Below, one piece after another: positions 2,261-14,030 of a DNA stretch of 64,000 nucleotides. A model generated the notes under the pieces. The model ran no database searches, was not told the DNA's origin, and saw nothing but the letters and a program-made list of their open reading frames with translations. This DNA comes from Monocercomonoides exilis PA203. Taxonomy: Eukaryota; Protista; Preaxostyla. The translations under genes and the position numbers were made by a program. Positions within the stretch are counted from its first letter, which is position 1; every line of letters begins with the position of its first letter. The DNA lies in contig LSRY02000056.1 of the NCBI GenBank assembly GCA_001643675.2, positions 62,001 through 126,000 on the forward strand, given 5' to 3'.

Positions 2261-3787
2261 TTTCTTCTTCTTCTTCGTTTTCATTTTCACCAGCTTCATC
2301 ATCATCTTCTTTGCAATGTTGAGATCTCTCTTTTCTTTCCTTCTTTCTCTTTTCTCTTTTCTTCTTCATTTTGATCATACTTTCGAATACCATTTTCCTT
2401 CTGGCTTTTCCTTTTTTAACGCTTTCTCTGCTGTCCTTCCCAAAGAGTCTGCTCTTCAATTCTTGTATCATCATCGTCATTTCCTTGTATAATTTGTCTT
2501 CCTCTTTCCTTCTCTTCTCACTTAACTCCATCTCATCATTCGATCGACTATTAGAAGTCGGCAACGAACAAGAGCAATGCTTTTCTTCCTGAATGGAATC
2601 CTTTTGCTCATCAAGTTTTTCAACAGCCACACCTTCACTGTCTCTTTCTTCTTCTTCTCTTTTTTCTTCTCCCCTTTCTTTTGCTCCTGTTCTTGCTGTT
2701 TCAATCATTTCGCACAACTGATTAACTTTTTTTGCCACTTTTTGACATCCGACTTTCCATAGGTCAACTCTGATGTCTGTTCTGTCATGCGTATGAAATT
2801 CATAAGTGGCTGCGAGAGGATAACGATATTCTCCGATTGCACAAGGAGAAAGCGATAGAGAAGTCAGATATTTGTTTATGAACTTTTGCAAATAATTCAA
2901 AAATAAAATAAATAATTATATTTTTTGCAAGAATTATCACACATTTCTTGTTGTTGACTTATTCAAAGAATACAAATTTCCTCTACAAAGCTTTAAATGT
3001 GGAATTAGCCCAAGTTTTATTGGTTGAATTATAGAAACAATTACGAGAATAATAGGTTTTTAGAGTAATATTTTAAAAAAGAATGAAAAACCATTGCACC
3101 GATTCTCATAAACATAACATCTGCCCCAGTTTGCCTTGTTCCAAAAGGAGGATTCATAAGCACAGTATCAAACTGTTGCAGTTGGACCGCGCTTGCATCA
3201 AATTGCTGGTATTTTTCTTGGTCATTACACAGAAACCTCAATAAAGGATGCCGTAAAAACAAATTGGGAAGAGACTCTAAAACATCAGCCAAAACAAATT
3301 CAACTTCAACTCCGGCTTGTTTGCAATTTGCCTTTGCAACCTGAATGGCATCTTCATCAATATCTACTCCTATTACATAACTTTTCAAAAAAAGAAAAGA
3401 AAAGAAAAGAAAAGAAAAGAAAAATAGAAGTAGATTATTTCAGAGATTGATTATTTCATTCATTTAAATGCAAATTAAACCTTGCTCCAAGAAGTTTTGC
3501 ACCAATTCCAAGAATCCCTGGTCCACAACCTATTAAACAGAAATATAGCTTTAATAATTGAATACAATTTCAAACCTAAATCTAAAACAATCTTCCCTTC
3601 AATGTCTCCATTTTCAAAAGCTTGATAAAGAAAATTTGAAGCAATTTCAGCAGGTGTGTTATACTGAAAAATAAATCTCAATTTTCATTATTAAAAAAAT
3701 ATGTACTTGTTCGAGAATAACATTTGGTTCATGGAAGGCATCTAACTCCGACAAATCTTGCTCCAAATGCTTCAATCTGCAATTCAT
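1824..3787 (-). CDS. METTL5: rRNA N6-adenosine methyltransferase METTL5 homologue, multi-exon, with long acidic C-terminal extension
   Basis: Spliced reading MNCRLKHLEQDLSELDAFHEPNVILEQ|YNTPAEIA...VLDLG|CGPGILGIG...GVDIDEDA...VLMNPPFGT...LYSLNKSTTRN|...YPLAATYEFH...DIRVDL; SAM-binding DLGCG and NPPF motifs; GT-AG introns in consistent phase. Confidence 0.9.
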
Positions 3788-3871
3788 TTTCGATAAAATT
3801 TTATTATTTATTTATGGCAATATTTCCTTAATTATTTCCATAAACTCAATTATTTTAAAAATTGATTTATA

Positions 3872-5159
3872 ATGAGTTTTGGACAACTTTCTGATGTATT
3901 TAATTGGGTGCAAGCAAAATGTTACAAAGAAGCTTTAAAAGCTGCGGATGCCCATCTTTCAAAGAACCCAAAAAATCCAGAATTATTAATAATGAAAGCA
4001 AAAGCTCTTTTTTATCTCAGAAAAAAGGAACAAGCACTTAAAATTGCAAGAGAAGTTAGAGAATTAAATGACAATTCATCTTATACTCAGTCTGAGATGG
4101 AGGCTTTGTTTTTTATGCTTGAGAAGCCGGAAGATAATGTTGTGAATGCAGAAAGAGCATTTACTTCAACGCCCTCGATTAATAATGCAAATAATTTGTT
4201 CATTTCTGTATGTCTTGCAAGACAATATGCTAGGCAACAACAGGTGTCATTTTTTTAACGAGATTTTTGAATTATTTGTGTTATTTTAAATATTTGATAA
4301 CAGATTGCAACACAATTCTACAAACTTTTTAAACAACCAGCATACTCATATTGGGCTATTACAAGTTTAGCGCAACAGTACTTAACTGCAAAAAGTCCAG
4401 TTCAACGTAACATGTTTTTAAAATTAGGAGAAGGTTATCTGAAGCAAAGAGCAGAAGGAAATGACATTCAAAATCCCTCGGAATTGCAACTATACTTTTT
4501 GTTTTTGAGGGGACTAGGAAAATATAAGCAAATAATTCAAATGCTCGGAGATAAGCGTTACGAACTTATGTTCTCAACTCCAATTGATCGTCTGAACATT
4601 CTAATGAATACAATAAAGGTAATGACAAATAGTCTGTTGAATTCAAAGCAAAAAGCAAATAAAGAGACAGAAGTGAAATTTCCAATTTCAGTCTGCTTTC
4701 TTTTTTCTGCTTTGAATCGAATAGGCAAGTGCTTAATCAAGGAGTTTGATGAGGATGGATGGCTCGGTTACAACATATACTTAGAGTCTCTTCGCTGCTT
4801 AATTGCAGTCTCTTGGACGCGAAAGAAGGAAGAAGAGCTTAGAGAAGTGCTGAACGACTATGAAGGAGCCGGCAATGAAAGCAAGGATGAAAAATTGAAA
4901 TTGCTTGGGTTGAATGAGAAGGAAGCAATTGAGCTAAAAGAACTTGTTGATGCTTTGAACAAAGCGGGGGAAATGCGAGTGAGATTGCCGGAATGGGTGA
5001 ACGACGGAGAGAAATTGGAGAAGATCCAACAGGATTTGTTTCCATCAGACTTGCAAGATCAGTTTAGAAAGACAAAGCTTTTTGGAGATTTTGAATTTGA
5101 TGATTCAATCGAAGAAGCTGAAAAATATTTTAATGAAATTGCAAGCTCATCATCATCAC

Positions 5160-10982: not shown

Positions 10983-12356
10983 CTAATCATCGTCCTCTGG
11001 AGGCTCATCGCCATCTGACATTCTGCGAGCAGCTCTTCTCAGCAAGTTTCTTTCATCAGCTTTTTGCTCATTCAATTGTTCGTCCAATTTCTCATACATT
11101 TCTCTTTCTTTTTCCATTGTTGAGAAGAATGTTCTCTGTGCAAATTCCTCGAATTCTTTAATATCGTCTCCAACGAAGAAGTTGTCAAATATTGTTCCTG
11201 CTTTAACCTGCCAGACATCAACAGCAATTCTTCGGATATTTGGAAGGATGTAGAATTCATCACGCTTTGAATAAAGAGGATTTTCAATAAGAGGCGGAAT
11301 CCATTCTCCTTTATAGTTTGGATTTGGAAGCATCCTTGGAATCCATTCGCCCTGATACGTTGGATTTGCTATGAGAGGTGCAACCCACGTTCCATTCACC
11401 TTTTCATCCCACCCTTCTGGCTTCAAGGCTCTGGGATCTGGGATAGTTTCGCGATCGTCCCAATCATCAGGTTTCTTGTCCAATGGATCAGGCATTTCTG
11501 GTGAATCTGCCCAATCTTCGGGTTTCTTTGCATTTGGATCTGGTATCTAACATTTGTAATTCATTAGAAAAAAATTTTTTTCCAATATAAACAGAAATAT
11601 ATGATTTGTCAAAAAAAAAAAAAAAAAAAGAAAATGATAAAATTTCTGCAAACATATCGTCGTTCAACAATTGGGAAATCATCAACAAAAGGCCCAGATT
11701 GATAGAGTTCATTGTCCATTCGTATTTCATATGAGCTATTTGGATGAATAATCAAAGTGTACATATGAGTAACTTTGTCGTTCAGCATTTTCAATGGTCG
11801 ATTTGATTGATATCTTTTTCCATTATAATTCCAAATAAACATCACATCACGCTTGTAATGCAGATAAACATCAGGACCAAACATCAGCAAATATGAAGAA
11901 TTTTCGTTGAAAGATTTTGGATCAACTTTATCGCTCAGAAGTTTAATATAACCTCCACCGCAATCAATATCCTGATCAAATTTTACAGTATATGAAATGA
12001 TGAGTGTTTTATCCTTATTAGAAAATGTCTCCCCCAAATCTGCAGAGATCTGATAACGCGATTTATGATCCATTGTTTTCATTCCCATTTGAGTTTCAAA
12101 ATCTCCATACCACTTACCAGCGTCCCACCCCCATGTTCCTCGTGTTCCGTCATTCGCATGTGCATCTGATTCAATCCAATGCTCTCTCCATCCCTCTGTT
12201 AATGTATCAAGAAAAAGTGTAAAAAATAAAACAGCAAATATAAAAAATAAATTGGGCAGTGCTTTCAAAAAACAGAAACTAACTTTTGAACTCTTCTGAA
12301 AAATAAATTTTGGATTGCGAAAAGCAAACAAGAAAAACAAGAATGAGATTGATCAT
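10983..12356 (-). CDS. CALR: Calreticulin-family ER lectin chaperone, three exons
   Basis: Signal peptide MINLILVFLVCFS then KIYFSEEF; DCGGGYIKLL; YLLMFGPD; THMYTLII; P-domain repeats IPDPNAKKPEDW, PDPLDKKPDDWD, GEWIP..I.NP.Y; VDVWQVKAGTIFDN. Confidence 0.93.
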
Positions 12357-12491
12357 TTGAATTATGTGTGAGATCACAATGAATATTTTATTGATGAGCA
12401 ATAAAAAGAATTTGGATCTGCAAGACATATTCAATTGTTTTTGGGTTAAAACCTCCATTATAAAAAAACCCATAAGCTAATTATTCCATAA

Positions 12492-14030
12492 ATGATAATT
12501 TTGTGGTGCATCAATTGGGTCTTTTCAACATGCTTAAATGAAGTTATATTTGAGAACGAGAACGAAAATTCTATTTATTTACTTGTAACTGGATTGTATG
12601 TATTTTAAATTAAATTTTTAATTTGAGATTGTTTCTATAAAGTGGCAAAGAGACCGATAGCATCATCGATTTTATTAACACATATCCTTCTTTTAAAGAA
12701 ACGAAAATTAAATTCAATGTTGAAGTTTTAGATCACGACAATAGTGCGTCTTTTACAGCAAAAGACTGGAATCGTATAGCGAATAAGATTAACTCAAATT
12801 ATGATTCTTACAACGCTTTTGTAGTGCTTCATGGCTTGTCTTACTAACACATTAAAAAACAATAAGTTATTGATTCAATTATTTATTTTAGGTTTTTCAA
12901 CTGTTGAGTTTACAACTTCATATCTTTCTTATCATTTCGGACTTCACGAGAAAACAATTGTTGTAACCACTTCACAGGTACTCCCAAGTGAAACGTATTC
13001 GGATTTTGTATCAAATGTTTTTGGGGCATTGAAGCTTGCAAACGCAGAGCCAAAAGTTCCTGAAGTTTTGTTCTATGCAGACAACACAATTCATCGTGGA
13101 ACAAGATTCATTGGACTTGAATCAGCATCGATTTCTGCATTTTCGTCGCCCAATTTCCCAACGTTAGGAACCGTTGGTCATGATGTTGCATTAGATAAAT
13201 CAAAGTTTGAAAATTATGATTTAGATCTATTCATCGTTTTTTTTCCATCATATATTTTGCAATCACTAATCTTGTTGATTTTTGCAATTTAGGATCCTAA
13301 ATGGAAATACTCAAGCACCGGAAATTTCTGATGCCAAAGATCGGGTTTCGATGATCTTCTTTTATCCAGGAATGCAGTTATCTGTTGTAAAAGCGCTTCT
13401 TGATTCATCTGAAGGAGCCGTTTTGCTTGCATTTGGAATGGGAAACGGTCCATCTACAGATAAGCCTCTGTTAAACCTGCTTAAGGAAGTTACAGATGCA
13501 GGGAAAGTGGTAGTTGATTGCACGCAATGCTACAATGTTTGCTGAAAAAGATTATTACAGCAAAGAAAAGGAAAAAGAAAGTTAATGTTGATAGAAACGA
13601 ACTAATTTAGTGCTTTAATCCTTTTTTTCTTTTTTAAATAAATTTTTATTAAAAGGTTATTCCTCGTTTTCTTTTTACCATGTTGACATTCTTTTTCATG
13701 GTTGATTTTATCTGTTTGATGATTGGATATTTTTATTATGAAATATTTAAAAAAATTTCATGTTTTTGTATCTTTGAATATAAATTTTCTATTTAGGGCC
13801 GTGTTGATTTCTCTGTTTATGCGACTGGGGAAGTTATGCACGATGCTGGATGTATCGGTGGGTGCGATCTGACTCCAGCTGCTGCTTTTACAAAGCTCAC
13901 TTATCTTTTGAACAAGAAAGCAAAAGACCCAAGCATTGACGTGAAGAAAATGATGGGTGAACCAATTGTTGGTGAGCTCACGAAACTGCAAGAAGCTGAT
14001 CTCCAAGTGATGAGATTTAGGCGAAATTAA
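12492..14030 (+). CDS. Type I L-asparaginase-like protein with putative signal peptide; catalytic motifs degenerate
   Basis: Spliced reading MIILWCINWVFSTC..SIYLLVTGF|GKE..KDWNRIANKINSNYDSYNAFVVLHG|FST..VVTTSQ..HRGTRFIG..AFSSPNFPTLG..FYPGM..LLAFGMGNGP..VVDCTQCYN|GRVDFSVYATG..DLTPAAAFTKLTYLL follows the AnsA/type I asparaginase motif order end to end. Confidence 0.85.

Follow-up and report, generated by a model that had tools for sequence, protein, structure and literature searches.

A probable asparaginase-family pseudoenzyme of the secretory pathway in Monocercomonoides exilis and other oxymonads

The window analysed here, a stretch of 64,000 nucleotides from the Monocercomonoides exilis PA203 genome assembly (82.3 Mb, 101 contigs; contig LSRY02000056.1, positions 62,001 to 126,000 of the forward strand), carries at its positions 12492-14030 (+) a five-exon gene for a protein of the asparaginase family whose catalytic motifs have been altered (Table 1). 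The spliced exons amounted to 1086 nt, that is 361 codons plus the TAA stop, and contained no internal stops. Their translation was identical to a database protein of 361 aa (P0001), which was retrieved by an exhaustive protein search with exon 3 and which a word search found labelled 'Asparaginase [Monocercomonoides exilis]' in NCBI, UniRef and EukProt. The GC content was 0.385 in the exons versus 0.15-0.24 in the introns. Assembled RNA contigs from four runs of a single study, labelled as metatranscriptomic 'synthetic metagenome' and informative about presence and structure rather than expression level, covered all five exons with no differing letters and showed exactly four joints; no alternative splice joint was found among them. 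These contigs began 17-23 nt past the ATG and continued across the stop codon into the 3' untranslated region, and the absence of loose ends gave no indication of a hidden exon upstream or downstream. The four runs contained 54-56% of the sampled words of a 1.9-kb stretch, which is approximately its exon share. The initial annotation, made from the DNA letters alone, had described the gene as intact and full length after splicing, as was indeed found.

The four RNA joints include two that themselves create altered catalytic motifs, TG|FG and HG|FST (bars mark exon joints), where an active enzyme would read TGGT and HGTDT. Intron 2 was assigned as GC..AG because its joint has 2 nt of slack and an AG acceptor is present in only one register (+1). 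This non-canonical intron, together with the origin of the RNA contigs in one study of unclear make-up, might suggest a gene-model or assembly artefact hiding a normal enzyme, an explanation that we regard as extremely improbable: all four runs gave exact joints without a mismatched letter, the reading frame survives with no other GT/AG pair, two other organisms, which have GT..AG at this site, carry the same substitutions, and two further altered motifs (NSA and RFIG) lie inside exons. Splice sites restoring TGGT or HGTDT, the outcome that would have overturned the initial annotation, were thus discarded, the RNA contigs showing a single form. An upstream exon or a different start was also rejected, given the in-frame TAA before the ATG, the absence of any other in-frame ATG ahead of the C-domain and the lack of loose 5' contig ends.

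Membership of the asparaginase family was clear. Pfam searches placed PF00710 (Asparaginase N-terminal) on exons 2-3 and PF17763 (Asparaginase_C) on exons 4-5, and both models matched the whole protein above their cut-offs (109.7 and 89.9 bits, respectively). Residues 65-348 matched type I asparaginases of known structure in the PDB with an E value of 1e-46, and exon-wise comparisons retrieved enzymes of the same type along with the human 60 kDa lysophospholipase. AlphaFold, fed with an alignment of 74 sequences, modelled the protein with a predicted local distance difference test (pLDDT) of 92.8 and a predicted template modelling (pTM) score of 0.89, the N-terminal leader appearing as a helix of low confidence over residues 2-15, with a disordered linker after it. 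Foldseek aligned this model with guinea-pig ASNase1 (4r8k) and E. coli AnsA (2him) at template modelling (TM) scores of 0.8-0.88. Both the family assignment and the retained fold proposed in the initial annotation were therefore supported. On the other hand, the protein fell below the cut-offs of the NCBI curated models (TIGR00519, 180.6 versus 260.5; NF006998, 206.9 versus 376), whereas an active homologue from Paratrimastix (P0171) passed that of TIGR00519. Identity as GatD was considered and discarded, since PF18195 gave no match and the scores of 134-136 bits compare with cut-offs of 310-324.

In E. coli type II asparaginase the catalytic sets are T12-K162-D90 and T12-Y25-E283, residues 14-33 form the lid loop, and each active site is located between the N-domain of a monomer and the C-domain of the adjacent one (PMC8948990). 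In the guinea-pig type I enzyme, Thr19, Thr116, Asp117 and Lys188 act in cis, the substrate is held by Asp84, Ser85 and Ala142, and Tyr308' is supplied by the 'Tyr-loop' in the C-domain of the neighbouring protomer (PMC12128190). The titles of PDB entries call T19A, T116A and K188M active-site mutants. Alignments with 9 and with 73 homologues revealed that P0001 has a glycine in place of the nucleophile threonine (TG|FG) and a deletion of 12-13 residues directly after TG, the lid segment being gone. NSA stands for D-S-S, HG|FST for HGTDT, TTSQ for TGSQ, and RGTRFIG carries a glycine in the position of the catalytic lysine. The structural motifs AFSSPN, FGMGNGP, TQC, YATG and DLTPAAAFTKLTYLL were kept. 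These readings, made from the exon translations and from P0001, agree with those of the initial annotation (TGFG, NSA, HGFST and RFIG, plus the retained motifs). Its statement that all catalytic residues had been replaced went too far, because the residue contributed in trans is still present: Tyr292 aligns with Tyr308' in a near-invariant column and lies in a loop of full length.

Compared with solved type I asparaginases (4r8k and 5dnc from guinea pig; 9s7y, the N-domain of the human 60 kDa lysophospholipase; and AnsA of E. coli, Vibrio and Yersinia, 2p2d, 2ocd and 3ntx), P0001 shares the predicted two-domain fold, the C-domain motifs and the trans tyrosine. It differs in lacking the equivalents of Thr19, Thr116, Asp117 and Lys188 (guinea-pig numbering) and the 12-13 residues after TG, in its hydrophobic leader at the N-terminus and in the absence of an ankyrin domain. 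According to the model, then, the two-domain fold is kept and the cis catalytic machinery is gone. With the nucleophile threonine, the 12-13 residues that follow, the Thr-Asp pair, the lysine and the substrate-contacting glycine of TGSQ all lost, the alignments showed that P0001 would be unable to hydrolyse asparagine alone by the known mechanism. A retained allosteric asparagine site like that of E. coli AnsA was considered and dropped; the positions that we take to form it (Arg240, Thr162) were not conserved across the metamonad group.

The same losses were found in two further sequences. A Blattamonas nauphoetae protein annotated as 'L-asparaginase [Blattamonas nauphoetae]' (P0003, 359 aa) was 46-47% identical to P0001 and, since its best match in the M. 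exilis genome was the gene described here, the two were considered orthologues. P0003 carries a hydrophobic leader and a C-terminal KDEL, and its motifs read MG|LG, TSA, HG|QSQ, TTYQ and RANRAIH. The third member lies on a 1.5-kb metagenome contig from ENA (L005, with P0002 as its exon 3), has introns at the same places and reads leader-TG|LG, DSA, HG|YSM, TSFQ and LGTRFIT. The cis catalytic set is thus missing from all three orthologues, the lysine site reading RFIG in M. exilis, RAIH in Blattamonas and RFIT in L005. The Blattamonas gene (L004) has three of the four M. exilis introns at the same positions and in the same phases. Both orthologues have an intron in the position and phase of intron 1, and both have a GT..AG intron in the position and phase of the GC..AG intron 2. 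An exhaustive representative protein search produced no dead-group members beyond these three, and one scan of JGI metagenomes returned only two distant loci (24% identity) and no further dead orthologue. By contrast, all the other metamonad homologues retrieved (from Paratrimastix, Trimastix, Carpediemonas, Dysnectes and two 'Eukaryota sp.' lineages) keep the catalytic motifs.

Sequence divergence between P0001 and P0003 argued for selection. The proportion of synonymous differences (pS) was 0.81, i.e. saturated, and that of non-synonymous differences (pN) was 0.375. The comparison of substitution rates (dN/dS) that the initial annotation had suggested could only be made qualitatively, because saturation of the synonymous sites precludes a numeric ratio; the constraint itself was evident, as neutral drift over the time needed to saturate pS would have wrecked both the reading frame and the similarity. 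In the phylogenetic tree the two dead proteins formed a clade with 100/100 support on a long stem (1.44). The tip-to-tip path was 1.61-1.62 for this pair and 1.56 for the active paralogues of the same two species, indicating that the dead protein has been as constrained as a working enzyme since the species split. The placement of the dead pair was left unresolved by the careful tree, and in approximately unbiased (AU) tests an origin within the metamonad clade (p 0.33) and a duplication confined to oxymonads (p 0.27) both escaped rejection.

The long stem, the degraded N-domain and the mere three orthologues recovered by the exhaustive search and the metagenome scan would also be expected of a duplicate that is still transcribed but has no function and is being lost. 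We consider this very improbable, as the reading frames are intact over 4-5 exons in separate species with intron positions in common, 47% amino-acid identity persists despite saturated synonymous sites, the pair diverges at the rate of the active pair, and conservation of the C-domain equals that seen in working enzymes. Catalytic residues are missing from a gene that is intact, expressed and conserved between species, and the protein is very probably a pseudoenzyme that belongs to the secretory pathway and is kept by selection; its conservation extends to at least three oxymonads. Maintenance by selection, as the initial annotation had proposed, is thus backed by the divergence values and by orthologues that have undergone the same losses and have introns in common.

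Purifying selection might preserve an enzyme that has taken up another chemistry or another substrate by means of new residues in the remodelled pocket. Ser101 and Ser69 are conserved near the old site, and mammalian relatives have side activities as the 60 kDa lysophospholipase; the known side activities of relatives, however, use the same threonine nucleophile. Here the nucleophile, the general base and acid, the oxyanion-hole threonine and the lid are all absent, and no alternative conserved pair of nucleophile and base was evident among the three orthologues, which makes a new chemistry improbable.

The hydrophobic leader noticed ahead of the domain in the initial annotation proved real. 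In P0001 its hydrophobicity value (KD10) was 2.15, above the maximum of 1.83 among 73 bacterial-type control sequences and the weakest among the metamonad homologues. The controls have a median of 9 residues ahead of TGGT, whereas the metamonad homologues have 25-60 residues with a hydrophobic stretch (KD10 2.0-3.4), some of them with a C-terminal anchor in addition. A putative signal-like leader was found on all three dead orthologues and on the active metamonad relatives, and was absent from the 73 controls. Secretory or endoplasmic reticulum (ER) targeting of the dead protein is therefore plausible from these leaders, and the KDEL of the Blattamonas orthologue completes the classical layout of a soluble ER resident. 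The suggestion that the dead protein had been moved into the secretory pathway is plausible as far as targeting is concerned, and fails as regards the move: since every active metamonad homologue already bears a signal-like leader, targeting to that pathway probably arose before catalysis was lost.

The leader-bearing type I asparaginases of metamonads (Paratrimastix P0171, Trimastix P0280, Carpediemonas P0030, Dysnectes P0176 and those of 'Eukaryota sp. GEM-RC1/TZLM1-RC') have in common with the dead pair the leader, the signatures GMGNGP and TPxA[AS]FTKL and 31-36% identity, and differ from it in keeping all catalytic motifs, the dead pair standing on a long stem. Among 282 proteins, the GMGNGP signature of the dead pair was also found in Paratrimastix, in P0168-P0170 (three of the four 'Eukaryota sp.' proteins), in P0151 (a Logan-assembly protein) and in P0094. 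As a separate observation, P0173 also carries a leader, like the metamonad type I asparaginases P0171, P0280, P0030, P0176 and P0168-P0170, and some of these proteins have C-terminal membrane anchors. Across the metamonads, an enzyme type that is usually cytosolic thus appears to have been made into secreted or surface-anchored proteins.

Where the M. exilis protein resides is less straightforward. It ends in ...MRFRRN, without a C-terminal KDEL or HDEL, and the RNA contigs cross its stop codon. The genome encodes a KDEL receptor (ERD2, PF00810; G000:C6:1449014-1449623, L011 and L012) in at least two exons. The protein may be secreted, retained by a partner or located elsewhere in the endomembrane system. 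Its gene lies head-to-head with a divergent calreticulin gene, an adjacency that is suggestive of a link to the ER at the level of gene order, and the two might be jointly regulated from the upstream region that they share. A conserved linkage was examined and rejected, as the neighbour in Blattamonas is a major facilitator superfamily (MFS) transporter gene.

Table 1. Features of the asparaginase-family gene and its neighbourhood (positions in the window; Blattamonas and L005 are the two orthologues).
Feature	Position	Strand	Description
Calreticulin gene (PF00262)	10983-12356	-	Head-to-head with the asparaginase-family gene; own signal-like leader; last open frame ends ...PPEDDD, no KDEL
Shared upstream region	12357..12491	.	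135 bp between the start codons of the asparaginase-family gene and the divergent calreticulin gene
Exon 1	12492..12595	+	Start codon, preceded by in-frame TAA; RNA joint
Exon 1, contents	12492-12536 (leader)		Leader of 14-15 hydrophobic residues, then polar linker and first beta-strand; exon ends with T33-G34 and two bases of F35
Intron 1	12596..12642	+	47 nt, GT..AG, phase 2; joint 12595>12643 in four RNA runs
Exon 2	12643..12833	+	191 nt, length identical in Blattamonas
Exon 2, G36	12644-12646		Stands for the nucleophile Thr
Exon 2, N68-S69-A70	12740-12748		Stands for D-S-S
Exon 2, H98	12830-12832		
Intron 2	12834..12891	+	58 nt, GC..AG, phase 1; joint 12832/3>12891/2 in four runs
Exon 3	12892..13204	+	
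Exon 3, F100-S101-T102	12894-12902		F100 and S101-T102 at the HGTDT site, for T-D-T
Exon 3, T124-T125-S126-Q127	12966-12977		Stands for TGSQ
Exon 3, R167...G173	13095-13115		Gly stands for the catalytic Lys
Intron 3	13205..13292	+	88 nt, GT..AG, phase 2; joint 13204>13293; missing from the Blattamonas gene
Exon 4	13293..13536	+	Domain linker and first half of the C-domain; TQC
Exon 4, FGMGNGP	13432-13452		Canonical
Intron 4	13537..13796	+	260 nt, GT..AG, phase 0; joint 13536>13797; same position in both orthologues
Exon 5	13797..14030	+	TPAAAFTKL, with Ala replacing a near-invariant Glu; C-terminus ...MRFRRN; TAA stop
Exon 5, Tyr292	13818-13820		In full-length Tyr-loop

One possibility is that the dead protein acts on its own in the lumen, as a homo-oligomer whose remodelled, lid-less pocket binds asparagine or aspartate, a peptide or else a glycopeptide, either within the ER or once secreted, and which would serve as a sensor, a chaperone-like factor or a scaffold. 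This follows the initial annotation, which had suggested an Asn/Gln or glycan binder, a sensor or a scaffold. Several former active-site positions have changed to one and the same, mostly small residue in all three orthologues (glycine for the nucleophile threonine, alanine after the retained serine of D-S-S, serine for the aspartate), deletion of the lid segment would open the pocket, the leader plus KDEL of the Blattamonas protein would suit a soluble ER resident, and in M. exilis 135 bp separate the start codon from that of calreticulin. Other pocket positions, however, vary freely (F/Q/Y at the Thr116 site and G/H/T at the Lys188 site), Blattamonas does not share the calreticulin neighbour, KDEL is missing from the M. 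exilis protein, and no test pointed to a ligand. Such a binder would, moreover, leave the retained trans tyrosine and the unusually canonical C-domain unexplained, and on balance we find it rather unlikely, though it is the main rival of the reading favoured below.

The C-domain became more telling when the active paralogues were considered. A second asparaginase locus of M. exilis (G000:C16, L001; MONOS_5194, P0164) keeps TGGT, DSS, HGTDT, TGSQ and RGNRxxK, and encodes a strongly hydrophobic leader at the start and a transmembrane segment plus a tail at the end; the Blattamonas active paralogue (P0165) is built in the same way. These paralogues resemble the dead protein in family, in their presence in the two species, in their apparent lumenal topology and in the extent of interspecies divergence, and differ from it in having the catalytic motifs, a transmembrane anchor with a tail, a truncated Tyr-loop and no GxGN. 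Specifically, five residues directly after the aligned tyrosine are deleted in the active pair, and GxGN is replaced by SANGT and SSVGV. Near-invariant C-domain columns were lost only once in the dead pair (Glu312), while in the active oxymonad pair GxGN is gone from both species and one of them has further losses. When the identity of the C-domain to three references was divided by that of the N-domain, the dead pair gave ratios of 1.21-1.37, the highest of 16 sequences, compared to 0.51-0.79 in the two active oxymonad paralogues and 0.61-1.04 in all others. The C-domain of the dead protein, with values of 0.43-0.51 to Paratrimastix, is as close to it as are the C-domains of working enzymes.

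Independently of this comparison, a DNA reading of the active M. exilis locus (L001, G000:C16:800578-803943, approximately 1048-2850) suggested that the nucleophile threonine of TGGT would be encoded by a micro-exon of 10 nt (1190-1199). The database model MONOS_5194 (P0164) begins after the first exons, and the sequence YTGGLMK in the Blattamonas model P0165 looks as though this micro-exon had been overlooked there too.

The pattern of domain conservation led us to favour, tentatively, a mixed dimer, in which the dead protein would be a non-catalytic partner subunit of the membrane-anchored active paralogue MONOS_5194, because the active sites span two protomers and both proteins are expected to face the same lumen, that of the secretory pathway. 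As a type I active site is made of the N-domain of one protomer and the Tyr-loop in the C-domain of its neighbour, the N-domain of the active subunit and the C-domain of the dead one would form one complete site per mixed dimer, the dead subunit donating Tyr292 and its Tyr-loop in trans to the site of the active subunit. In Blattamonas, the KDEL of the dead subunit could set the residence of the complex. A stronger version, to which we attach slightly less weight, holds that the oxymonad secretory asparaginase has become an obligate heteromer through complementary decay, the dead protein being a catalytic half-subunit; were this so, the Blattamonas dead protein would possibly be a KDEL-bearing retention subunit. 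Trypanosomatid AdoMetDC and deoxyhypusine synthase have dead paralogues as partner subunits ('prozymes'). We propose the analogy because in both cases a dead paralogue would pair with an impaired active paralogue in an oligomer with shared sites, though fold, lineage and compartment are unrelated.

Several observations weigh against the mixed dimer. The aligned tyrosine is still present in the active paralogues, which may be self-sufficient, and the dead pair has itself altered a near-invariant C-domain residue, Glu312. The complementarity amounts to a single event on the oxymonad stem, seen in only two full-length dead sequences, and it is this pattern of domain conservation that would, indirectly, associate the dead protein with the active one. 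The KDEL of the Blattamonas protein contrasts with the plasma-membrane-type anchor of its active paralogue and could mean that the two occupy different compartments at steady state. The M. exilis protein, in turn, has no KDEL although its genome encodes a KDEL receptor. Finally, with all RNA contigs coming from one 'synthetic metagenome' study, their independence and the level of expression are uncertain.

Two further sets of asparaginase-like sequences were noted during the searches. One ENA protein of 450 aa (P0155) has an asparaginase fold without TGGT, HGTDT and the lysine; it sits on a very long branch and is unrelated to the oxymonad dead group. Two JGI loci (L013 and L014; Ga0255342_1005535 and Ga0255343_1002213, approximately 2700-3900) contain an asparaginase-like frame with an intact HGTDT and several in-frame stops, two of which are found where the GG of TGGT is expected. 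These could reflect reassigned stop codons or a broken gene.

The family and fold of the M. exilis protein are ordinary and its gene had already been annotated, as a plain asparaginase. Full-text literature searches brought up no publication about pseudoenzymes in this asparaginase family or about the asparaginases of M. exilis, a sign, if not proof, that the dead oxymonad asparaginase has not been described so far. To our knowledge, complementary degeneration of the sort considered here has not been seen in this lineage and compartment. Databases call both the dead protein and its Blattamonas orthologue plain 'asparaginase', and under this label metabolic reconstructions of the amitochondriate M. 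exilis would count an enzyme that is almost certainly unable to work alone. If the heteromer holds true, the pair of paralogues would be a clean case, provided by nature, of two gene copies degenerating in complementary ways in an enzyme that shares its active sites between subunits.

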